Positions 17,711 to 61,073 of a stretch of DNA of 64,000 nucleotides are shown one piece after another; the first letter of the stretch is position 1, and every line of letters starts with the position of its first letter. Both the position numbers and the translations under genes were made by a program. Location of the stretch: positions 145,848-209,847 of the IMG/VR virus record IMGVR_UViG_3300034073_003542; one strand, given 5' to 3'. Under the pieces are notes generated by a model, which was not told the origin of the DNA, did not search any database, and was given only the letters and a program-made list of their open reading frames with translations.

Positions 17711-18271
17711 TCATTTAAAAGCTAACTCCCAATGACTTGCACAAACAGGCAAATATTTTTCTTCGCATCCTAATTCCACAGAATTACCTTCGATGGTAGG
17801 AATCCCATCTATCATTTTCAGATTGAATACAGCCTTTTGTCTACAATAAAAACACGTAGTCTTAATTTCATCAATAACATCAGCTATAGATAATAATAAA
17901 GCAGAAGCAGGAAATGGTTCTTTTCTAAAATCAGTTCTTAAACCATAACAAATAATAGGTGGACTACCTGTATATGTAGCTCTCCTCATACATTTAATGA
18001 TTTCGGTTGATAAAAATTGTACTTCATCAACTAAAATAATATCAGCATCTTCATGCCAGCCAAACATAGTTTGGTCTTGTTGAATAATAAAATCCGCCTC
18101 GGTTTCTAATCCGGCTCTAGATTTTACCGTTCTTTCTCCAAAACGAGTATCAATAGCTGGCTTAACTACATCTACTTTCTTACCTTGTTGACGATAAGAA
18201 TGAGCGGTTGCTAATAAATCAAGCGTTTTGGCACTTCCTACAACCCCATACTTAAAATAGAGTTTAGCCAT
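17711..18271 (-). CDS. tdk: thymidine kinase
   Basis: GVVGSAKT P-loop, DTR, VDEVQF, YGLRTDF, zinc Cys motifs. Confidence 0.95.
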   Translation of the reverse strand: MAKLYFKYGVVGSAKTLDLLATAHSYRQQGKKVDVVKPAIDTRFGERTVKSRAGLETEADFIIQQDQTMFGWHEDADIILVDEVQFLSTEIIKCMRRATYTGSPPIICYGLRTDFRKEPFPASALLLSIADVIDEIKTTCFYCRQKAVFNLKMIDGIPTIEGNSVELGCEEKYLPVCASHWELAFK

Positions 18272-19140
18272 TATTTATATTCCTTATAACATTTATTGTT
18301 AGCTATTGAATTAATTATTCCATGACTGATATTATAGTCCTTAGCTATATGTCTATGTGTTTCTTTTCCTTTAGATAGTCTTTTTCTTATTTCTTTAACT
18401 TGTGTAAGATTTAATTTTCTTTGACTTAATAAATATTGTTCATATTTTATTCTTTGTTTTATTATCTTATCAAAATTTTTCTTTTTTCTTTTTAGGAATA
18501 TTGTTGCGTCCTTATACATAAAATCCATTAGTTTTTTAATTTCTTTGTACCCATATAATCTAATATCGCAAGTATAAGTGTTTTGTTTGGTTTTTTTATA
18601 TTTTACCATAAAAGAAGATATATTTAATTTTCTTTTAAAGAACCTTAATAAATATTCACTAAAGTCACTATTAGAAATAATCATAAAGGTATATTTATTT
18701 TGATTTTTACTCTTCGTAACAGATATACCTCCATCACCATCAAAATATCCTCTTATAAAGTGATGAATTAAATTTTTAGGTATGTGTCTGTATGGAAATT
18801 TTAAGGTATAACTTTTTTGATTATCTAATCCCTTATTAATTAAGTGATTAGTAAAAATTTCTCCGTATATTTTGATATATTTATATTTACTTTGTTTATT
18901 TTTGTTGTTTGGAGTATAATGTTTCGAATCTCCTATTTTCCCAGAATATTTTGTGTACTTTTTAAAGTAACGCAATATCTCTATATCTCTAGCCTGTAAT
19001 TCAATTTGAACGTACTTATTACTTTTCTTAGTAGAGATATGACCATCTGCACATATAAATCCAAATAAATACGCTTTATCTTCTGTATCTATGACTTTAA
19101 AATAATCGTGATCTTTATTATGTATATGTTTATTATTCAT
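18271..19140 (-). CDS. LAGLIDADG homing endonuclease with C-terminal HTH
   Basis: YLFGFICADG and FIRGYFDGDG motifs; C-terminal HRHIAKDYNIS. Confidence 0.85.
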   Translation of the reverse strand: MNNKHIHNKDHDYFKVIDTEDKAYLFGFICADGHISTKKSNKYVQIELQARDIEILRYFKKYTKYSGKIGDSKHYTPNNKNKQSKYKYIKIYGEIFTNHLINKGLDNQKSYTLKFPYRHIPKNLIHHFIRGYFDGDGGISVTKSKNQNKYTFMIISNSDFSEYLLRFFKRKLNISSFMVKYKKTKQNTYTCDIRLYGYKEIKKLMDFMYKDATIFLKRKKKNFDKIIKQRIKYEQYLLSQRKLNLTQVKEIRKRLSKGKETHRHIAKDYNISHGIINSIANNKCYKEYK

Positions 19141-20158
19141 TTTCTTTTAGCAGAAAGTTATTGTTGATGACTTTAAAACTTATATCTGAATCTTTACTTC
19201 TAACAACTATCCCCTCTGCTTGTTGTTGTGGAGAAGCGTTTGGAAAGAAGTCTTTATATTTTATGTCGGATAAAGTAAATAGCTCATTAATTGTATATTT
19301 AAAATTATCTCCTTGTTCGATAATTGGAACAAATTTAAGTTCTATTCTCTTTATAATATCTAACGCATCGTCAATTGGTAGCTTTTTATTTGTTTCAATA
19401 TCTACAACGTTGAATATATAGATGTCTGGTTCTGTTACCTTCATCTTATTTCCTTGTATATTTCCAATTACCTCTCCCTGAATAGCTACTTTAAATCCAT
19501 CTTGATGTAATTTTCTAAGCTTATTTTCTATGTCATACTTCTCGCTTAGTTTCCAGAACATATGGTCGGGTTTTTCTTTGTATGAATAATTTCGCCCACA
19601 AACATGATAATCTCCCGCTGCATCAATTAAAAATGTGGATGATGTACCATCCAGCTTTAATGATATATAGTATGGGCGACCCCAAAGAGCCTCGATAAAA
19701 CGATACTTGTCGTTATTCTGAACTCTTTCTTCGTCTGTCTTAGAAATAGGCCAACTAAATCCGCCCTTAACATCTCCTTGAATAGCTGTTGGTACTGGTG
19801 GTTCATATTTTTCTATTCCTAGAAACTCTGTAACATCAGCACCTTCAACCGCTAAACCTATTTCTGGGAATTTATCTATAGGCATAGCAACGCCTTGGGA
19901 TAAGACTTTTTTTAATTTTATGCTCTTGAGTCTATACTTGTTGATACCATCACGCCAGCAGGATTTTTTAAGAAATTCGTAGCGAGGCTCGTCTGGCAAT
20001 AGGCTGTCTATCTCAAAAAACAAACAGAGGTCGTCTACATTAAATTCATCTTTCTTGACAACGCATTGCCAATCAAGAATCTTAGCAAGAACAATCTGAT
20101 CTGCCACCTCAATAGGAAGAATTTCTTTGATTTTTTGTATTGATGCTAGCTGACGCAT
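19133..20158 (-). CDS. RNA ligase, DRB0094 family
   Basis: MRQLASIQ N-terminus, FEIDS, KTDEERVQN, KLDGTS, QGE, EGIV, FKVI motifs. Confidence 0.9.
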   Translation of the reverse strand: MRQLASIQKIKEILPIEVADQIVLAKILDWQCVVKKDEFNVDDLCLFFEIDSLLPDEPRYEFLKKSCWRDGINKYRLKSIKLKKVLSQGVAMPIDKFPEIGLAVEGADVTEFLGIEKYEPPVPTAIQGDVKGGFSWPISKTDEERVQNNDKYRFIEALWGRPYYISLKLDGTSSTFLIDAAGDYHVCGRNYSYKEKPDHMFWKLSEKYDIENKLRKLHQDGFKVAIQGEVIGNIQGNKMKVTEPDIYIFNVVDIETNKKLPIDDALDIIKRIELKFVPIIEQGDNFKYTINELFTLSDIKYKDFFPNASPQQQAEGIVVRSKDSDISFKVINNNFLLKENE

Positions 20159-22383: not shown

Positions 22384-23229
22384 ATGAAAAAAACAAAGAA
22401 ATGTAAACAGTGTGGAAAAAGAAAATCTATAGACAAATACTATAAACACAAGACTTGTAAAGATGGATATAGAGATATTTGTAAGATATGTATTAATAAA
22501 TTATCTAAAGAATATGTAGAGAAAAATAAAGAAAAAATTGCCCAACGACAAAAAAAATATAGAGAAAAAAATAAAGAAAAGCTTTCTCAACAAAGAAAAG
22601 ACTATAGAGAGAAAAATAAAGAAAAGGTCAAAAAACAAAAACAGGCCAACTATTTAAAACACAAAAATAAGACATTACAAAAAAGTAAAGAATATAAAGA
22701 AAAACTTAAAAAAGAAAATCCAGAAAAATTAAAATTATGGCGAAAAAATTATTGTATTAGACATAAAAATAAATTAAAAGAATATAAGCGAAACTATCAC
22801 CAAAAAAACAAAGTAAAAATAAGAAATATAAGGAATAAATATAGAAAATATAAATACGATTCAGATATTGGATATAGAATGCAAGAGAATATTAGGAGTA
22901 GAATGAGATATCTCTTGAAAGGATATTATAAAAGTAAAGCCACACTAGAATTATTAGGATGTTCGGACGATCAACTTAAAAAACATCTAGAAAAACAATT
23001 TGAGCCAAGTATGACTTGGGATAATTACGGATATTATGGGTGGCATATTGACCATATCAGACCATGTTCTAGTTTTGATTTATCTGATCTAGAACAACAA
23101 AAACAGTGCTTTCATTATACGAATTTACAGCCATTATGGGCAAAAGACAATTATATTAAAGGTAATAAGATACCTATTTCTTCCAGTGATGATCTTCATG
23201 GCCTGCCATTAAACACCCATACGGAATAA
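22384..23229 (+). CDS. HNH homing endonuclease with Lys-rich helical repeats
   Basis: N-terminal CxxC pairs, repeated YREKNKEK, C-terminal WHIDHIRP...NLQPLWAKDN; ATG at 22384. Confidence 0.85.
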   Translation: MKKTKKCKQCGKRKSIDKYYKHKTCKDGYRDICKICINKLSKEYVEKNKEKIAQRQKKYREKNKEKLSQQRKDYREKNKEKVKKQKQANYLKHKNKTLQKSKEYKEKLKKENPEKLKLWRKNYCIRHKNKLKEYKRNYHQKNKVKIRNIRNKYRKYKYDSDIGYRMQENIRSRMRYLLKGYYKSKATLELLGCSDDQLKKHLEKQFEPSMTWDNYGYYGWHIDHIRPCSSFDLSDLEQQKQCFHYTNLQPLWAKDNYIKGNKIPISSSDDLHGLPLNTHTE

Positions 23230-24553
23230 TTTCATCCACTATATTTCCAAGATTAAATTTTTGGATTTGGTTCTTTACTTTTTCAGCATTTTTATAAGCA
23301 GATGGAAGTTCTGTTATATCCATTTTTCCTGTGTAGAATCTTACATCTAGACCCCTAGTATCTTCATCAAACAATTCATATCCTGTTTTGTTTTGTAGAG
23401 ATATTTTAGTGTATTCAGTTCTACTCATTTCGCGGCCAGCACCATGACTTGTAAAACCTAAATTAGTTTCGGTTTCTTCTCCATTAACAATAAGAATACC
23501 ATCTCTCATATTAAGAGGTATTAATCTTAGACCATTAGTTGAGTCAGGAACAAATTCATTTAATAATGGTGTTGCTCCTTTGGCATGGATGTAAGTATTA
23601 TCTTTTTTAAACACAAAATTATGTTCATTCCAATAATTGTCATGTATATTTACATTAATTTTACTAGCAATTTCCGTATGAATAAGCGTATGATTTAGCT
23701 TTGTCCATTCTCTAACTACTTGTAAAGCGTTCCAATATGTAACACCTTCTTCTGTGTCCATTGGAATCCAGCCTAAATTATCATTAACGTTTGGAGCTAT
23801 TTCTTTACGAAACTTCTCAGCTATGTCATTTCCCTTCTTGAATAATAAAGCTCCGAAAGAGCGACTGCCATGATGAGTAACTAATACTGTTTCTCCAGAG
23901 CTTTTTAAGTAGCCTACAAATAGGAAATGGTTGCCGTTTCCTTGAGTTCTTAAATCTTTTTGGGCTTTATCTAGACTTTTTTCTCCAGATAAATATAGAT
24001 TGTTAAGAATATCGTTCTTTAAAGGTTCTGGTATAATATCTTTTGGATTTTGTCTTCCACCAGCACCAAAATGTGTTATTTTTTCTGCTTTATCTAGGAC
24101 AATTTTTGGATCTATTTTTCCTAGATTAGAAAACATAACTGAACAACATACGTCGGCACTGTGAAATTTTGGGTGGATTGCATTTAAAGTTTGTATGACT
24201 CCACCCACAGGAATATCAAACTCGCCCGTAGGGCAAGCGTCAGGCATCACAGCAGCATTTATAGCGGTTGGAGCCACCAAAATATTGTGCATAGCCCGCG
24301 TGACCGAAAACATATTGTTAACTTCGGCCTCATTTTTTGGGTCGATTTCTATATTGCAATGAAAATTGATTGGTTCATCCCTTGGTTCCATTGTTTTTGG
24401 TGGAAGAGGAACAAAACGTGTCTGAATTTCGTTATACAGATTTTCTTCGCTGTACTTGTCTCGATTTTGATTTGCCCACTCAATAGCTGACTTAAACCAT
24501 TTCCCAGGGGTAAAACCCATACTGATTAAAGATTGACCAGTAATTGACATCAT
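23174..24553 (-). CDS. rtcB: RtcB RNA 3'-phosphate/5'-OH ligase
   Basis: MPDACP, GNGNHF, HHGSR, HAKGATP, HGAGR, ELPSAYK motifs. Confidence 0.92.
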   Translation of the reverse strand: MMSITGQSLISMGFTPGKWFKSAIEWANQNRDKYSEENLYNEIQTRFVPLPPKTMEPRDEPINFHCNIEIDPKNEAEVNNMFSVTRAMHNILVAPTAINAAVMPDACPTGEFDIPVGGVIQTLNAIHPKFHSADVCCSVMFSNLGKIDPKIVLDKAEKITHFGAGGRQNPKDIIPEPLKNDILNNLYLSGEKSLDKAQKDLRTQGNGNHFLFVGYLKSSGETVLVTHHGSRSFGALLFKKGNDIAEKFRKEIAPNVNDNLGWIPMDTEEGVTYWNALQVVREWTKLNHTLIHTEIASKINVNIHDNYWNEHNFVFKKDNTYIHAKGATPLLNEFVPDSTNGLRLIPLNMRDGILIVNGEETETNLGFTSHGAGREMSRTEYTKISLQNKTGYELFDEDTRGLDVRFYTGKMDITELPSAYKNAEKVKNQIQKFNLGNIVDEIIPYGCLMAGHEDHHWKK

Positions 24554-24599
24554 ACACCTCACTTAAACACAACCGAGCCAGGATTCGACACGATATCCT

Positions 24600-29936: not shown

Positions 29937-30008
29937 AGACCGCAGTTGGAATCGAACCAACAAATGCTGTTTTGCAGACAGCCACCAACGCCAATTGATT
30001 TTGCGGCC
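29937..30008 (-). tRNA. tRNA-Cys(GCA)
   Basis: GGCCGCA/TGCGGTC acceptor, U discriminator, loop CTGCAAA, TTCGA T loop. Confidence 0.9.
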
Positions 30009-56255: not shown

Positions 56256-56615
56256 TCACGCAACGGCTTCTTTTTCCAGTTCCTTAGAAAGCCTCTGAGG
56301 TTTATTCATCCAAGGTTGTGGAGCGATATTTATAAACCAATCTTGGATAGATGGAATAAATCCACAATCTTCTTGAACGTGCTGTTCTCCCACCCATCGA
56401 GTTGGGATTACCTTACCAGTAGAAAGAGTAATGGTATTACCAAATACTCTGGCACATTCATAGATACCCTGAGAATGATGTCGCAAAGCACGATGGCGAA
56501 AGTCACCAAACATTTCTTTAGAGGCATCAAACCATTCATGAATATCCATATAGTCAGCAACTTCTCCACCCCACTTCTTTACGGATGAAAGAGAATGATG
56601 ATAAGGATTAGACAT
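56256..56615 (-). CDS. DUF6915-like protein
   Basis: PYHH..SS..KWGG...H.WFD.SK...HRALRHH..GI pattern. Confidence 0.7.
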   Translation of the reverse strand: MSNPYHHSLSSVKKWGGEVADYMDIHEWFDASKEMFGDFRHRALRHHSQGIYECARVFGNTITLSTGKVIPTRWVGEQHVQEDCGFIPSIQDWFINIAPQPWMNKPQRLSKELEKEAVA

Positions 56616-56950: not shown

Positions 56951-57453
56951 TTCTTTTCTCCGGGTTATCGTTTCCTGTTCACTGATTATAGCATAGGTGC
57001 AGTGGCTGTCAACAGTTTTTTCGCTGGCTATCGTCATAATTTCGAATCTGGTAGATTGAGTGGAACATAATCGTTGGAGATAGAATATTCAAAAGCTTTT
57101 ATCTGATCTAGATTATCAATACTCAGAATAAGCTTTCCAGTTTTTCTAATTTGATTTTCTTGCCACTTTACATTAGCAGTAGCATTCTTGCTCATTCTCC
57201 AACCAGGCCATTGATGATCATTATATCTATTGAGAATAACAATCAGAGAATTTACATCGCCCCTAACATGGGCGTATTGAGCGAATGGAAATCCACCAGT
57301 TTTTTGGAATTTAAAAGTACTAGCTTTTGGTCCCTGAATTGTATTGATATTGATTTTTAATCTAGCGTCATTAATATGAACACTAGAAGCAATACATATA
57401 GACGAGAAGTGTATCGAGAAGAGAATGAAGAGAGTTAAGATGGGTTTCATAAG

Positions 57454-57527
57454 TAGCTGCGGTGAGGGTCGAACTCACACTGTTCGGATTTTAAGTCCGA
57501 TTTCTCTGCCTGTTGGAATACGCAGCC
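57454..57527 (-). tRNA. tRNA-Leu(TAA), short variable loop
   Basis: TCGGA CTTAAAA TCCGA anticodon arm. Confidence 0.9.
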
Positions 57528-57531
57528 ATAA

Positions 57532-57606
57532 TACCGGGAACTGGATTTGAACCAGCACTGTTATGCTTCTAAGGCATATGTCTCCTGCCAATTGGACTAC
57601 CCCGGC
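57532..57606 (-). tRNA. tRNA-Leu(TAG), short variable loop
   Basis: TATGC CTTAGAA GCATA. Confidence 0.9.
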
Positions 57607-57614
57607 GTGTCAAG

Positions 57615-57688
57615 TAGGAAGTATTGGAGTCGAACCAATCTTTTGAGTACCTTATAAGAGTACGTGCCACTACCGGCGGCAACTTCCC
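57615..57688 (-). tRNA. tRNA-Ile(TAT)
   Basis: GTACT CTTATAA GGTAC. Confidence 0.85.
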
Positions 57689-57727
57689 ATGTTTTTTATT
57701 ATACACCGACGCTGGAGAAAAGTCAAG

Positions 57728-57800
57728 TAGACCGGGTGAGAGTCGAACTCACGATAGGCGGATTAAAAGTCCGCTACTTTAGCCGCTAAGTTACCGATCC
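57728..57800 (-). tRNA. tRNA-Lys(TTT)
   Basis: GCGGA CTTTTAA TCCGC. Confidence 0.92.
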
Positions 57801-57908
57801 ATGTTCAGTCAAGTATACCATACCCTTCTCTGTTGTCAACCCCTCAATTTTGTGTCTGCCATTTTGGCAGCCTCGCTACTCCGCCTGTCAAATTGGCAGT
57901 GTCTGAAG

Positions 57909-57979
57909 TGAGTGATGAAAGAATCGAACTTTCGTCGAGATGTTAAGAGCATCCTATAATACCATTATACTAATCACCC
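57909..57979 (-). tRNA. tRNA-Lys(CTT)
   Basis: GGATG CTCTTAA CATCT. Confidence 0.9.
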
Positions 57980-57983
57980 GAAA

Positions 57984-58068
57984 TGCAGAGTTGGGGAGTC
58001 GAACCCTATCCTTCCGTCCAGTTCATTAAGGAACGAGCTTAGAACGCACGTACTGGCTGCAACCCTGC
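57984..58068 (-). tRNA. non-canonical D-armless tRNA-Arg(TCT)
   Basis: GCAGGGT/ACTCTGC acceptor, ACGTGC GTTCTAA GCTCGT anticodon arm, TTCGACT T loop; own promoter at 58079-58106. Confidence 0.65.
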
Positions 58069-58107
58069 GTGTCGATACATTATACATTACCGAATCGAAC
58101 TGTCAAG

Positions 58108-58197
58108 CGAAGGACAAGAGGATTGAACTCTCACCGGGTTTTTAATCCGGCCTACTTTTCCAAAGTAGTGCAGCAAACCAATATCTGCCTATCCTTC
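58108..58197 (-). tRNA. tRNA-Ser(GGA)
   Basis: CTACT TTGGAAA AGTAG; long variable arm. Confidence 0.9.
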
Positions 58198-58212
58198 ATA
58201 GAACCAAACAAG

Positions 58213-58298
58213 CGGAGGCGAAAGGAATCGAACCTTCGAGGGTTTTTTAGGCCCCAGCTATTTTCAAGATAGTGTCCTCGACCTACCGGACCACCTCC
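58213..58298 (-). tRNA. tRNA-Ser(TGA)
   Basis: CTAT CTTGAAA ATAG; long variable arm. Confidence 0.9.
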
Positions 58299-58311
58299 AT
58301 ATATTATCAAG

Positions 58312-58396
58312 CGGAAGTAGCAGGGTTCGAACCTGCAAGCCTTTTTAGGGGCCAACTCTTTAGCAAAGAGCTTCCTCACCAACTCGGATTACTTCC
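58312..58396 (-). tRNA. tRNA-Ser(GCT)
   Basis: GCTCT TTGCTAA AGAGT; long variable arm. Confidence 0.9.
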
Positions 58397-58401
58397 ATTA
58401 G

Positions 58402-58483
58402 CACTAGAAGTAGGACTCGAACCTACAGTGTCTTTCGACGGGAGATTAACAGTCTCCTGCGTTTACCATTCCGCCACTCTAGT
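58402..58483 (-). tRNA. tRNA-Asn(GTT) with long variable arm
   Basis: GGAGA CTGTTAA TCTCC; extra GTC GAAA GAC arm. Confidence 0.85.
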
Positions 58484-58497
58484 ATGATTATCGTCAG

Positions 58498-58570
58498 GGT
58501 GGCTAATGGGAGTCGAACCCATATCACTTGATTCACAGTCAAGCCGCTTCACCAGTTAGCGTATAACCAC
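58498..58570 (-). tRNA. tRNA-His(GTG)
   Basis: CTTGA CTGTGAA TCAAG; C discriminator. Confidence 0.9.
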
Positions 58571-58572
58571 AG

Positions 58573-58643
58573 TTCCGGGGCTACGATTCGAACGTAGAAT
58601 AAATGGTCCAAAGCCATTTGTGATACCATTTCACTACCCCGGA
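58573..58643 (-). tRNA. tRNA-Gln(TTG)
   Basis: AATGG CTTTGGA CCATT. Confidence 0.9.
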
Positions 58644-58898
58644 ATGTTAAGCGTCTCTATGCGATCCGCTTAGTTTTTTACTTTCTCTCAAATACTCAGC
58701 AATCTCTATGAGCTTCTTTCCAAGTTCTTCAATGTTGTCTGCTTCTTTTTTAGTAAGCCACGAAGCAACGTGCATGAAAAGATAATTCTCTTTACCTTTG
58801 GTTCTCACTCCAGCAACCCCGACAGACGGGTTATTAAACTCTTGTGGAAAGTTTCTCATCATGCACCTAGTTTAGCATAACTTCAAGAAGTTGTCAAG

Positions 58899-58971
58899 TG
58901 GAGCAAGTCAGAGTCGAACTGACATGGCGAGATTTTCAGTCTCGTGCCGTGACCGCGTAGGCTATTGCTCC
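58899..58971 (-). tRNA. tRNA-Phe(GAA)
   Basis: CGAGA CTGAAAA TCTCG. Confidence 0.9.
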
Positions 58972-58982
58972 ATAATTATCAG

Positions 58983-59056
58983 TCCTCAATGTAGGCATCG
59001 AACCCACTACCTTCTCGGTGTAAACGAGACGCTCTAGCCGAATGAGCTAATTGAGG
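58983..59056 (-). tRNA. tRNA-Val(TAC)
   Basis: TCTCG TTTACAC CGAGA. Confidence 0.9.
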
Positions 59057-59061
59057 ATATA

Positions 59062-59133
59062 TCTAGAATGTCGAAATCGAATCGCTCTTGCTTGCCCCAA
59101 ACAAGCCGTGCAAACCATTACACTTCATTCTAG
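59062..59133 (-). tRNA. tRNA-Pro(TGG)
   Basis: GCTTG TTTGGGG CAAGC; weak T stem. Confidence 0.8.
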
Positions 59134-59153
59134 TTATTTAACAGTCTTGAACA

Positions 59154-59225
59154 AGTTGATGATAGGAGTTGAACCTACAACTAACTTCATACCAAGAAGC
59201 TACTCTACCATTGAGTTACATCAAC
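59154..59225 (-). tRNA. tRNA-Thr(GGT)
   Basis: GCTTC TTGGTAT GAAGT. Confidence 0.9.
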
Positions 59226-59228
59226 ATA

Positions 59229-59299
59229 AGCCAATACGAGGAATCGAACCCCGGTGTTCTCATTACAAGTGAGACGTAATTCCACTATACGATACTGGC
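59229..59299 (-). tRNA. tRNA-Thr(TGT)
   Basis: TCTCA CTTGTAA TGAGA. Confidence 0.9.
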
Positions 59300-59305
59300 A
59301 AATTA

Positions 59306-59379
59306 TGCGTCTATCCAGATTCGAACTGGAACATTCAGTTTGGAAGACTGACAGGCTAGCCGTTGAACCTCATAGACGC
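59306..59379 (-). tRNA. tRNA-Gly(TCC)
   Basis: TCAGT CTTCCAA ACTGA. Confidence 0.9.
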
Positions 59380-59385
59380 GTTTAG

Positions 59386-59457
59386 TGACCCTACTGAGAA
59401 TCGAACTCAGATTGCTAGATTGAAAGTCTAGATTCCTAACCATTAGAAGATAGGGCC
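59386..59457 (-). tRNA. tRNA-Glu(TTC)
   Basis: CTAGA CTTTCAA TCTAG. Confidence 0.9.
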
Positions 59458-59496
59458 ATATCATTTCATTATACCAACTCTTTTCATTCTGTCAAG

Positions 59497-59567
59497 TGGA
59501 CCGTAAGAGAATCGAACTCTTATTTGAAGCTTGCAAAGCTACCGTTCTCCCGTTGAACTAACAGCCC
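59497..59567 (-). tRNA. tRNA-Ala(TGC)
   Basis: AGC TTTGCAA GCT; G3:U70. Confidence 0.9.
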
Positions 59568-59574
59568 ATATCTA

Positions 59575-59648
59575 TCCGCTAGGAAAGAGTCGAACTTTCG
59601 TCTCGAACTTATCAGGTTCGCATTCTAAAACCGTTGAAATACTAGCGG
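59575..59648 (-). tRNA. tRNA-Ile(GAT)
   Basis: CGAAC CTGATAA GTTCG. Confidence 0.9.
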
Positions 59649-59655
59649 TCAAAAG

Positions 59656-59741
59656 TCCCCCGTAGAAGAATTGAACTACCCGGCAGCCACCTATTAATTT
59701 AATGCCCCGTGTTTTACAGACACAGAATAGGAGTACGAGGG
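59656..59741 (-). tRNA. non-canonical D-armless tRNA-Tyr(GTA)
   Basis: CCCTCGT/ACGGGGG acceptor, CTGTGT CTGTAAA ACACGG anticodon arm, TTCAATT T loop. Confidence 0.7.
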
Positions 59742-59763
59742 AAATTATCATCATACATATCAG

Positions 59764-59836
59764 CGATTCTACCGGGAATCGAACCCGGATTTCCAGATGG
59801 ACAGTCTAGCGTCGTGAACCGTTGGACCATAGAACC
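59764..59836 (-). tRNA. tRNA-Asp(GTC)
   Basis: CTAGA CTGTCCA TCTGG. Confidence 0.88.
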
Positions 59837-59842
59837 GTTAAG

Positions 59843-59914
59843 TGGGTCGTGAATGATTTGCACATTCGTCTCTGGTTTCGTAGACCAGTATACTATCTAC
59901 TATACTAACAACCC
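59843..59914 (-). tRNA. tRNA-Arg(ACG)
   Basis: CTGGT CTACGAA ACCAG. Confidence 0.88.
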
Positions 59915-59920
59915 ATATTA

Positions 59921-60003
59921 TGTCGGCGGCGGGATTTGAACCACTTTAATGCGATTTCAAGTTTATGAGACTTGCGAGGACGACCAGACTCCTCTACGCC
60001 GAA
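59921..60003 (-). tRNA. tRNA-Met(CAT), initiator-like, with T-stem insertion
   Basis: CAAGT CTCATAA ACTTG; 1:72 mismatch. Confidence 0.75.
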
Positions 60004-60004
60004 A

Positions 60005-60075
60005 TGCCTCTTGCTTGAATTGAACAAGCGTCAACTTCGTATGAAAAAGTTAGATTACCACTATCCTAAAGAGGC
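60005..60075 (-). tRNA. tRNA with CAT anticodon (elongator Met or Ile2)
   Basis: ACTTT TTCATAC GAAGT. Confidence 0.8.
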
Positions 60076-60080
60076 GAAAG

Positions 60081-60151
60081 CATACTCACAAGGATTCGAG
60101 CCTTGACCAACTGTTTTGGAGACAGTGATGCTACCGTTACACCATGAGTAT
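60081..60151 (-). tRNA. tRNA-Trp(CCA)
   Basis: ACTGT CTCCAAA ACAGT; G discriminator. Confidence 0.88.
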
Positions 60152-60184: not shown

Positions 60185-60547
60185 GAAACTATTTGTACTC
60201 TCTGATATTCCCCAAGAGAAGGCTCAAGGGGTTCTCACCCCGAGCACAAAGGGGCAAGAATTAGCCTTCGCAGGCTGGATTTTGGCGATATCCAAAGCCT
60301 GAATGACTACGGACGTTCCACGATGTTTTCGTGGTATCAATCGTGTTGTAGTTAATTCTGGACATTTGAAATTCGTTACCCTTAATGTTGTTTTTCCTGA
60401 CCTCTACCATTATAGCCGACCCGACACCCGTTGTCAAGTGGTCCGTTTCTTTCCTTACACCATTATTATAAAAGTCGTCTAATATTTCTGCCATTATGGC
60501 AGTCTCGCTACCCGCCCTGCCATTTTGGCAGTTTAGAAAAGTCTACG

Positions 60548-60578: not shown

Positions 60579-60782
60579 CTTCTCGCCTCAATAGCGGTAA
60601 TGAGTCTCTATTTTATACTAAGCTAACCGCTATTCCGCAGTCGGTCAAGACGTAAGATTGTTGACTAGACTAGCTTAGGCAAAGTTGCGCATCCTTTGCA
60701 TTTTCTACGCAAGACGGAATGGATACCGTCCTGCCGCTTTGGGCCTAAAGTCTGTTTATTCTCGCCCAAACGAGCCGCTGAT

Positions 60783-61073
60783 TCACTCAGCCGCAGCTTC
60801 CGCAGGAGCTTCAAGGTTCGGAGCCTTGACCTTCTTCGGATTGGCCGAATCGCCAGCCTGCTCCGCAGTCTCACCCGTCACACGAGCACGCCACACCTTG
60901 TAGCCCTGCTCCGTAAACGTCTTGACTGCACCAGCCTTGACGCCAATGTTCTCAACCGAATCACCAAACCGCTCGTCCAGAAAATCCGCAATCGCCTGAG
61001 CAACCGCTTCACGATCAACGCTACCAGCGGCAGCAACCAGACTCACATCAAACGCACACTTTTCACGCACCAT
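60783..61073 (-). CDS. small Ala-rich protein, probably highly expressed
   Basis: GGAG RBS, own promoter near 61124-61151, GC-richer codon usage. Confidence 0.7.
   Translation of the reverse strand: MVREKCAFDVSLVAAAGSVDREAVAQAIADFLDERFGDSVENIGVKAGAVKTFTEQGYKVWRARVTGETAEQAGDSANPKKVKAPNLEAPAEAAAE

Follow-up and report, generated by a model that had tools for sequence, protein, structure and literature searches.

An element at positions 59656-59741, on the minus strand of a 64,000-nucleotide stretch of viral DNA, is likely to be a real gene for a working tyrosine tRNA with the anticodon GUA and a rewired core, a reading to which we assign a probability of roughly 0.75. The stretch, referred to below as the window, covers positions 145,848 to 209,847 of IMG/VR record IMGVR_UViG_3300034073_003542. 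Comparison of 84 distinct homologous sequences shows the architecture of the encoded RNA, which consists of an 8-bp acceptor stem, a 2-nt linker, a 6-bp D' (D-replacement) helix, a 6-bp anticodon stem, a variable stem of 3-4 bp, a UGG-N segment and a 4-bp T stem. Only 8 nt, namely the linker (2 nt) and one strand of the D' helix (6 nt), separate the acceptor stem from the anticodon stem, and there is no D hairpin. The variable stem crosses the D' helix and the fold is therefore a pseudoknot, both of whose helices are supported by covariation. That the gene works as a tRNA gene is inferred, there being no expression, processing, aminoacylation or probing data. The segments of the window copy, given in the 5' to 3' order of the RNA, and two features beside the gene are as follows.

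59656..59741, minus strand: whole gene for the non-canonical tRNA-Tyr(GUA), 86 nt, without an encoded CCA here
59734..59741, minus strand: acceptor stem, 5' strand CCCTCGTA (tRNA positions 1-8), paired with 59657-59664
59732..59733, minus strand: 2-nt linker CU; in the family mostly UU, with U at the second position in 80/84
59726..59731, minus strand: D' helix, 5' strand CCTATT, paired with 59690-59695
59707..59725, minus strand: anticodon arm, 6-bp stem CTGTGT/ACACGG and 7-nt loop CTGTAAA, with GTA at 59715-59717
59703..59706, minus strand: variable-arm stem, 5' strand GGCA, paired with 59682-59685
59696..59702, minus strand: A/U-rich spacer TTAAATT of the variable loop; 5-10 nt in the family, mostly 7, and variable in sequence
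59690..59695, minus strand: D' helix, 3' strand AATAGG, in the variable-arm loop, paired with 59726-59731
59686..59689, minus strand: UGG-N segment TGGC, 3' of the D' helix; UGG in 84/84, as imposed by the search patterns
59682..59685, minus strand: variable-arm stem, 3' strand TGCC, paired with 59703-59706
59665..59679, minus strand: T arm, 4-layer stem GTAG/CTTC (one U.U) and loop TTCAATT, the loop being imposed by the search patterns
59656..59664, minus strand: acceptor stem, 3' strand, with the discriminator A (59656), TACGGGGG; A73 in 83/84
59763..59836, minus strand: tRNA-Asp(GUC), the upstream neighbour, called by ARAGORN; the Asp-Tyr module is common to a related phage
60409..60437, minus strand: sigma-70-like promoter match (12/12), the nearest perfect one upstream; a consensus match only

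Taken by itself, the window sequence makes the D'-helix observation real yet merely suggestive, and it is the comparative data that settle the matter. The two strands of the helix, CCTATT (59731-59726) and AATAGG (59695-59690), are perfect Watson-Crick complements, and TGG (59689-59687) comes next in the variable-arm loop. An initial annotation, made from sequence alone, had reported this exact complementarity and a GG after AATAGG, and its transcription of the minus strand proves letter-exact. By our own arithmetic (84 placements x 4^-6), a 9-nt 5' segment and a 26-nt variable region would share a perfect 6-mer complement by chance about 2% of the time, and the MFE fold of the single window sequence is unremarkable (z = -1.08). 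The element occupies a 114-nt gap between tRNA-Asp (59763-59836) and tRNA-Ile-GAU (59575-59648). ARAGORN called 25 tRNAs across the window and none at 59656-59741, as the initial annotation had predicted in saying that the program would miss the gene or score it poorly. Rfam misses it too: model RF00005 gave no match there at its gathering score (29 bits) or at E<=10, and the tRNA-Sec model RF01852 gave none for the window copy. The covariance model of the family described below (R1) scores the same copy at 80.7 bits (E = 3.6e-25). A hidden canonical cloverleaf, with another anticodon or in another register, was rejected, no acceptable D or anticodon arm being present in the sequence. The window copy is atypical within its family in that its acceptor stem starts at C1, paired with the equivalent of G72, a pair found in only 5 of 84 members. 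Directly after the discriminator it has CTT where CCA stands in most members, and its T stem (layers G-C, U.U, A-U, G-C) contains one U.U mismatch.

The surrounding tRNA array, as called by ARAGORN, spans 57453-60151, with a further tRNA-Cys lying apart at 29937. The 25 ARAGORN genes represent 18 amino acids, Pro and Tyr being absent, and the window has another non-standard gene, at 59062-59133, for Pro (UGG). The claim of the initial annotation that this is the only Tyr tRNA in a set covering the other 19 amino acids holds only if that Pro gene is accepted. The promoter match at 60409..60437 precedes the block Trp-Met-Met-Arg-Asp-Tyr-Ile-Ala, and the next perfect sigma-70-like site (59468-59495) is downstream of the Tyr gene. 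Rfam identifies a self-cleaving Pistol ribozyme near the array, and the window also has, at 57984-58068, a second candidate of the 8/4 type (8-bp acceptor stem, 4-bp T stem) without a D hairpin, with anticodon UCU and 24.9 bits against R1. Other genes of the window encode RtcB (23174-24562), an RNA ligase (19133-20158), UvdE and a LAGLIDADG endonuclease. The window belongs to a large phage, probably of Bacteroidota, judging from its G+C content of about 33%, its gene content and layout (many small genes, single strand), and the 54% identity of its RtcB to that of the jumbo Tenacibaculum phage PTm5.

An identical Tyr gene is present in three IMG/VR contigs of the same phage, one of them of 209,847 bp, and a search of IMG/VR with the exact 19-mer of the anticodon arm returned only these three contigs, with zero variation. 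Among 50,697 GenBank phage records, megablast and blastn searches with the array and with three family members as queries revealed no homologue, the sole matches being short ones between the anticodon arm and ordinary tRNAs. A match of the T-arm 19-mer in contig L062 was discarded as a chance match inside a coding region. When neighbouring proteins were used as anchors, the DUF6915 protein (56256-56615) led only to unrelated contexts. The DUF932 anchor led to about 40 phage contigs with tRNA arrays, in which the tRNA-Tyr is ordinary and without sequence similarity to the window gene; matches to CTGTAAA in the array gaps of these contigs turned out to be homing-endonuclease ORFs and were rejected. 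Contigs L063-L068 have a homologue, 72% identical, of a 71-aa ORF that lies within the array (58647-58862), and they carry a syntenic array with an ARAGORN gap again after tRNA-Asp and the same Tyr gene in the gap. Between the window and L063 the Tyr gene has 2 differences in 86 positions, the 22-nt Asp-Tyr spacer has 3 substitutions and 1 indel, tRNA-Asp has one compensatory double change, and the flanking tRNAs are unrelated. From the two differences, set against the divergence of the spacer, the Tyr gene is as constrained as a bona fide tRNA, and its greater conservation relative to the adjacent spacer points to purifying selection.

The family was extended by pattern scans. A variable-gap pattern gave zero matches in a metagenome scan, although it fits the window, and a tolerant fixed-length pattern found a homologue in an unrelated array (L070), where all acceptor pairs are changed yet paired and CCTATT/AATAGG has become CCTACT/GGTAGG. 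Looser patterns found many more homologues in IMG/VR, and members were also found on six GTDB MAG contigs (Planctomycetota and Proteobacteria) with up to 39 tRNAs in 8 kb. The family as scanned comprises 84 distinct sequences from 119 fetched loci on more than 100 contigs (about 100 from IMG/VR, the 6 from GTDB MAGs, plus JGI, ENA and Logan contigs), and every member sequence is of metagenomic or MAG origin. Member lengths range over 84-90 nt, with G+C contents of 41-59% and pairwise identities of 44-99% (median 64%). The search patterns imposed the UGG, the two G's preceding it and the T-loop sequence, so that invariance at these places is no evidence. A covariance model built on the family scores its members at 66-95 bits and canonical tRNAs at no more than 31 bits; intermediate matches were a gene of the same fold with an Arg-UCG anticodon (L073:240-321, 41.6 bits) and a variant of 100 nt whose anticodon loop has 16 nt (L093:727-826, 43.7 bits). 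RF00005 matched none of the family members tested. The only weak Rfam matches of the family are to tRNA-Sec, for which RF01852 gave 26-30 bits with five members, without reaching its gathering score of 47.

Pairs were counted on a structure-blind MAFFT alignment (A6) of the 84 distinct sequences. Over all helices, 94.4% of cells are paired, as compared to 69% in shuffled and 39-52% in slid controls, and the covariation score of 0.698 (0.194 for shuffled alignments) was reached by none of 500 shuffles. The D' helix, with the consensus CCNNNN/NNNNGG, has 99.2% of its cells paired and compensatory changes at 4 of its 6 pairs: two C-G pairs are invariant, and each of the other four occurs as CG, UA, AU and GC as well as the wobble UG. 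The CC (positions 11-12) was also invariant in 45 sequences from a scan without a CC requirement, and RNAalifold independently predicts the helix. Its 5' strand leads directly into the anticodon stem, which has 98.6% of cells paired and covariation at 5 of 6 pairs; the pair of positions 17 and 35 is formed in 79 of 84 members. The variable stem has a G-N-C core in which the middle pair covaries (GC27/CG33/UA13/AU6); the 77% pairing reported by the counting tool for this stem was lowered by a one-column MAFFT slip in one subfamily. In the T stem, 90.2% of cells are paired and 2 pairs covary.

The acceptor stem has 98.4% of cells paired and covariation at 8 of 8 pairs. Its eighth pair is formed in 83 of 84 members (GC66/AU10/UA4/UG3) and was found de novo by RNAalifold. 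It is here that the initial annotation was in error. It had drawn a 7/5 arrangement with G62.U78 as first T pair, and this was rejected in favor of 8/4 on the basis of the pair counts and RNAalifold, the would-be first T pair being unpaired in 68 of 84 members. Its stem lengths are replaced by an 8/4 acceptor/T arrangement that includes an A8-U78 pair, a 6-bp anticodon stem and the linker CU. Its central claims, namely that a D hairpin is absent, that an enlarged variable arm offers its loop as the pairing partner of the 5' strand, and that the fold is pseudoknotted, held across the 84 homologues. It had also named covariation in homologues as a way to check the pairing, and in the pair counts the D' pairing is conserved with compensatory changes.

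These results bear on the possibility that the element is a decayed tRNA pseudogene in which CCTATT and AATAGG match by chance. Degenerate tRNAs do occur in phage arrays, and both the unremarkable fold energy and the chance of about 2% for the 6-mer match would allow such an interpretation. Against it, the pairing is kept in 84 diverged homologues by compensatory changes, the adjacent spacer has diverged further than the gene itself, and CCA is encoded in most members. The pseudogene interpretation is thereby excluded.

The identity of the tRNA rests on several features of the family. An anticodon-free scan, in which only U33 and R37 were fixed within the loop, gave 49 distinct matches, all of them family members and all (49/49) with the anticodon GUA. 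The discriminator is A73 in 83 of 84 members, a position that was imposed by the anticodon-free pattern and not by the scan that yielded the 45 sequences. U33 and A37 are found in all members, in part because the scans imposed them. CCA stands directly after the discriminator in 61 of 84 members, compared to about 1/64 expected by chance, and no pattern required it. There is also a long variable arm with its 3-4-bp stem at the place usual for tRNA-Tyr, the enlarged loop being engaged in the D' helix. The Tyr identity proposed in the initial annotation thus held on GUA and A73, with charging by TyrRS and use in translation remaining inferences.

The genomic setting of the family fits a tRNA gene in general, the members sitting in tRNA arrays and usually being the sole tRNA-Tyr there. 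Of 60 member loci, 50 are without an ARAGORN call for tRNA-Tyr, and arrays of 32-39 tRNAs are among these. In eight member loci a canonical tRNA-Tyr is also present, in L078 and L084 immediately behind the odd gene, and the odd gene is therefore not always needed for decoding. A rival explanation that makes use of this fact is that the RNA is a non-translated mimic of tRNA-Tyr, a decoy or sponge that titrates a host factor such as a tRNA-Tyr-directed nuclease. In support, over-expressed tRNA-Tyr neutralises PtuA-PtuB toxicity (PMC12673091), a canonical tRNA-Tyr accompanies the odd gene in those eight arrays, and the rewired core might not suit some step of translation. Arguing against a decoy, the gene is the sole tRNA-Tyr in most arrays, which otherwise cover nearly all amino acids, and the features used in charging and decoding are kept (a paired acceptor end, A73, CCA in 61/84, U33, GUA and A37), as are the 12-bp acceptor/T branch for EF-Tu and the 6-bp anticodon stem. 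Furthermore, if the RNA served to attract a nuclease that cuts the variable arm, one would expect that arm to have stayed normal. We consider the decoy unlikely, though it cannot be excluded without biochemistry, and a working tRNA-Tyr remains the preferred reading.

Among known tRNAs, the family stands closest to the 8/4 group related to tRNA-Sec, and it is the strand topology that is new. Mukai et al. (2017; PMC5389517) described (8/4) allo-tRNAs, as well as phage (8/4) tRNA-Ser and tRNA-His, in bacteria and phages; the definition of the group, which also admits 9/3 and 8/5 branches, asks further for a long anticodon stem and a long variable arm. Like (8/4) allo-tRNAs and tRNA-Sec, the Tyr family has an 8-bp acceptor stem and a 4-bp T stem that together make a 12-bp branch, a 6-bp anticodon stem, a long variable arm, and a 6-bp D helix followed by 4 nt; like the allo-tRNAs, it occurs in bacteria and in phage tRNA clusters. 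These proportions fit with the finding that its only weak Rfam matches are to tRNA-Sec. The difference lies in where the D arm is built. In allo-tRNAs and tRNA-Sec it is an ordinary hairpin, with a 6-bp stem and a tetraloop, placed between the acceptor and anticodon stems, whereas in the Tyr family the ascending D strand and the "tetraloop" UGG-N lie inside the variable-arm loop, which produces the pseudoknot. The identities also differ, being Tyr (GUA, A73) for the family and Ser, His, Cys or Sec for allo-tRNAs and tRNA-Sec.

The canonical class II tRNA-Tyr (RF00005) shares with the family the GUA in a CUGUAAA/C loop, A73, a UUCRAUU T loop, a stem at the variable-arm position and placement in tRNA arrays, and is set apart by its D hairpin and its 7/5 rather than 8/4 arrangement. 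Metazoan tRNA-Ser-AGY and nematode mitochondrial tRNAs likewise lack the D stem-loop that usually separates the acceptor stem from the anticodon stem. Mitochondrial D-armless tRNAs are shortened, with an unpaired replacement loop, and are served by adapted mitochondrial factors (PMC4013460, PMC7609411). In contrast, the Tyr family is full length (84-90 nt), its replacement strand is paired with a distant strand, and it is found in phages of bacteria. The tRNA-like structures (TLS-Val/His/Tyr) of plant RNA viruses also involve pseudoknot-based tRNA mimicry. Their pseudoknot lies at the 3' end of an RNA genome, where it forms the acceptor arm. The Tyr family is encoded by a free-standing gene of a DNA phage and has an acceptor arm of the usual kind; what its pseudoknot reconstructs is the D/variable core.

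The similarity to the allo-tRNA D arm raises the question of whether the unusual topology exists only in a precursor. If a precursor were cut and re-ligated, for example by a phage RtcB or RNA ligase, so that NNNNGG-UGG-N was moved to a place before CCNNNN, the result would be an ordinary D hairpin with a 6-bp stem and a 4-nt loop. In favor of this rival, the product would be exactly a Sec-like D arm, the phage of the window encodes both RtcB and an RNA ligase, and its array has a Pistol ribozyme nearby. On the other side, no pathway is known to us that transposes an internal segment of a tRNA, and the alignment contains no conserved cleavage motif (bulge-helix-bulge or ribozyme) flanking the segment. 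In addition, the two strands of the variable stem, which lie on either side of the segment, covary in the way that a stable mature structure would, and members occur in very different phages and in MAG arrays, where the presence of repair enzymes has not been checked. Re-ligation is very unlikely in our judgment, and the pseudoknot is taken below as the structure of the mature tRNA.

A picture of such a tRNA at work can be inferred from the geometry of tRNA and tRNA-Sec, in which the 6-bp D stem of tRNA-Sec fills the space of the 4-bp D stem plus the 8-14 and 15-48 layers. In the proposed model, the 6-bp long-range D' helix would stack on the anticodon stem in place of a D arm of the tRNA-Sec/allo-tRNA type and would fill the same space. 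The UGG would then act as G18G19 at the elbow, docking on the T loop so that the L shape is kept, and the chain would return to the T stem by way of the 3' strand of the variable stem. The part given to the UGG rests on analogy with tRNA-Sec and allo-tRNAs, whose D arm has a 6-bp stem and a 4-nt loop (PMC5389517). The initial annotation had made the same suggestion for the GG, and it remains an inference, the UGG having been imposed by the search patterns. Maturation would involve RNase P and CCA addition, charging would be by a bacterial-type TyrRS through A73, G34-U35 and the variable stem, and the tRNA would decode UAY codons on the ribosome during infection. RNase P, the CCA enzyme, EF-Tu and TyrRS make use of the acceptor/T branch, A73, G34-U35 and a stem at the variable-arm position. 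All of these elements are kept in the family.

Why such a fold should persist is a separate matter. The variable arm of tRNA-Tyr is a target of anti-phage defense: Septu and retron-Eco7 PtuAB defend E. coli by cutting it (PMC13096335, PMC12673091), and the tRNA-Tyr of T5-like phages escapes through a different variable loop (PMC11555353, PMC12673091, PMC13096335). The fold may likewise persist in phage and mobile arrays by being a poor substrate for host nucleases of this kind. The T5/SP15-type tRNA-Tyr resembles the family in being phage-encoded and in having an altered variable arm as the relevant feature when confronted with retron-Eco7 or Septu, but it is a canonical cloverleaf with a somewhat longer variable loop (PMC11555353, PMC12673091, PMC13096335). 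Unlike in that case, the hosts of the family are not E. coli, and the resistance of its members to these nucleases is untested. The initial annotation had raised nuclease evasion as a possibility, and Septu and retron-Eco7 PtuAB supply a concrete precedent, by analogy only, without resistance having been shown. A counter-defense benefit of the fold is accordingly speculative, and the balance at present tips slightly against it.

The competing account holds that the gene is a functional tRNA-Tyr whose fold confers no counter-defense benefit: an 8/4 Sec-like lineage would have spread along with mobile arrays, and the fold would be its frozen accident. Other phage 8/4 tRNAs (Ser and His) have no known link to defense (PMC5389517), and the same fold occurs sporadically with Arg anticodons (L073:240-321; window 57984-58068). 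Weighing against this account, the fold, when found with the Tyr-family signature, is exclusive to GUA (49/49 in the anticodon-free scan), and tRNA-Tyr is the very tRNA attacked at its variable arm by defense nucleases (PMC13096335, PMC12673091). We are inclined, by a small margin, not to favor the frozen accident. Either account leaves the gene a working tRNA-Tyr. A bolder reading, which we regard as no more than possible, is that the family represents a new structural class of elongator tRNA with a pseudoknot core, the first natural non-mitochondrial one without a D hairpin, which arose in phage and mobile arrays as a counter-defense, being neither recognised nor cut by tRNA-Tyr variable-arm nucleases of the host (Septu, retron-Eco7 PtuAB and relatives) and yet still accepted by TyrRS, EF-Tu and the ribosome.

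The initial annotation had not recognised the fold as described, and this held within the sources searched. Rfam 15 has no family for it, and no description was found in the open-access literature searched, which included the 2017 allo-tRNA paper (PMC5389517) and a 2020 review of non-canonical tRNAs; an earlier report elsewhere is not ruled out. According to a 2024 paper, all known bacterial tRNAs are canonical cloverleaves (PMC11551756), and a widespread, covariation-supported tRNA of another strand topology would be a natural counter-example. The family would thereby show what TyrRS, EF-Tu, RNase P, the CCA enzyme and the ribosome need of the tRNA core. ARAGORN and Rfam miss the entire family, and therefore arrays annotated as lacking tRNA-Tyr may have one; a new model is needed if tRNAs of phages and MAGs are to be counted correctly. 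A compact and probably orthogonal tRNA-Tyr scaffold would also be of interest to genetic-code engineering. Finally, since anti-phage nucleases are known to attack tRNA-Tyr at its variable arm, a testable hypothesis of structural escape follows from the family.

A second tRNA-like gene without a D hairpin lies in the same window as the odd tRNA-Tyr, the GUA gene with a pseudoknotted pairing between its D strand and variable arm. Neither ARAGORN nor Rfam detected it, nor the tRNA-Pro-like gene listed with it:

57984-58068, minus strand, tRNA-like gene with UCU (Arg)
59062-59133, minus strand, tRNA-Pro(UGG)-like gene

The Arg candidate has an acceptor stem of 8 bp (GCAGGGTT/AACTCTGC) and a T stem of 4 bp (GGGG/CCCC), and carries UCU in its anticodon loop. 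A strand reading CCAGT has its complement, ACTGG, in the variable region; this pairing is crossed by a TTCC/GGAA stem. The covariance model of the odd tRNA-Tyr family gives the gene 24.9 bits, and the corresponding place in a related phage with a syntenic array (L063) is occupied by an ordinary tRNA-Arg-UCU. The Pro-like gene has a normal D arm and anticodon arm; its T stem (AGCGA-TTCGATT-TCGAC) combines only three Watson-Crick pairs with an A.C and a G.A. In the array of another related phage, a homologue (at about L069:574-645) has an identical T arm, and the acceptor and anticodon stems covary between the two.

The fold of the odd tRNA-Tyr was also seen with different anticodon loops on two contigs:

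L073:240-321, minus strand, Arg-UCG gene with the D-hairpin-less fold, 41.6 bits
L093:727-826, minus strand, 100-nt variant of the same fold, 43.7 bits

In the longer of these, the anticodon loop has 16 nt and UGG is replaced by AGG.

In a few arrays an ordinary tRNA-Tyr follows the odd one within 10 nt (L078:6273-6453 and L084:5255-5427). The two genes of such a pair might share out the work between them, or the arrangement might be an intermediate stage of evolution. Two contigs from Planctomycetota metagenome-assembled genomes, L131 (CAVPVK010000006.1, 337,775 bp) and L133, pack 32-39 tRNA genes into 8 kb and could be chromosomal islands, plasmids or binned phages. The sole tRNA-Tyr of both arrays is the odd gene.

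Two further tRNAs of the window were noted:

58401-58483, minus strand, tRNA-Asn(GUU), 83 nt, whose variable arm forms a stem-loop
59919-60005, minus strand, tRNA-Met(CAU) of 87 nt, 28.6 bits, just below the Rfam threshold

A variable arm of this kind is unusual for Asn, and long Asn genes are also present in L038, L051, L052 and L069. Several tRNAs in L069:1-1600 have non-standard T loops (ATCGTCC, GTCGTCG, GTCGGCA and TGCAAAT) instead of TTCRA, and ARAGORN left several of these genes uncalled.

Repeats and a hairpin accompany the array:

60487-60530 and 57852-57898, minus strand, paired copies of a CTGCC-N-GGCAG palindrome (e.g. CTGCCAAAATGGCAG)
60222-60245, minus strand, hairpin GCTCGGGGTGAGAACCCCTTGAGC, just upstream of tRNA-Trp

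The palindrome pairs adjoin promoter-like sites, one at each end of the array; ORF translations hint at further copies near 54.8, 56.2 and 61.3 kb. The hairpin has a counterpart at the equivalent position in the syntenic relative (L063:77-100).

The window also encodes a self-cleaving ribozyme and three proteins:

60703-60775, minus strand, Pistol self-cleaving ribozyme, 60.6 bits
19133-20158, minus strand, RNA ligase with a PHA02142 OB-fold domain
23174-24562, minus strand, RtcB
18271-19140, minus strand, LAGLIDADG endonuclease

The ribozyme lies upstream of the tRNA array, at a distance of about 550 nt, and follows immediately on the stop codon of an ORF of 96 aa (60783-61073). The RNA ligase and RtcB probably constitute a tRNA-repair set, carried by the same phage as the odd tRNAs.
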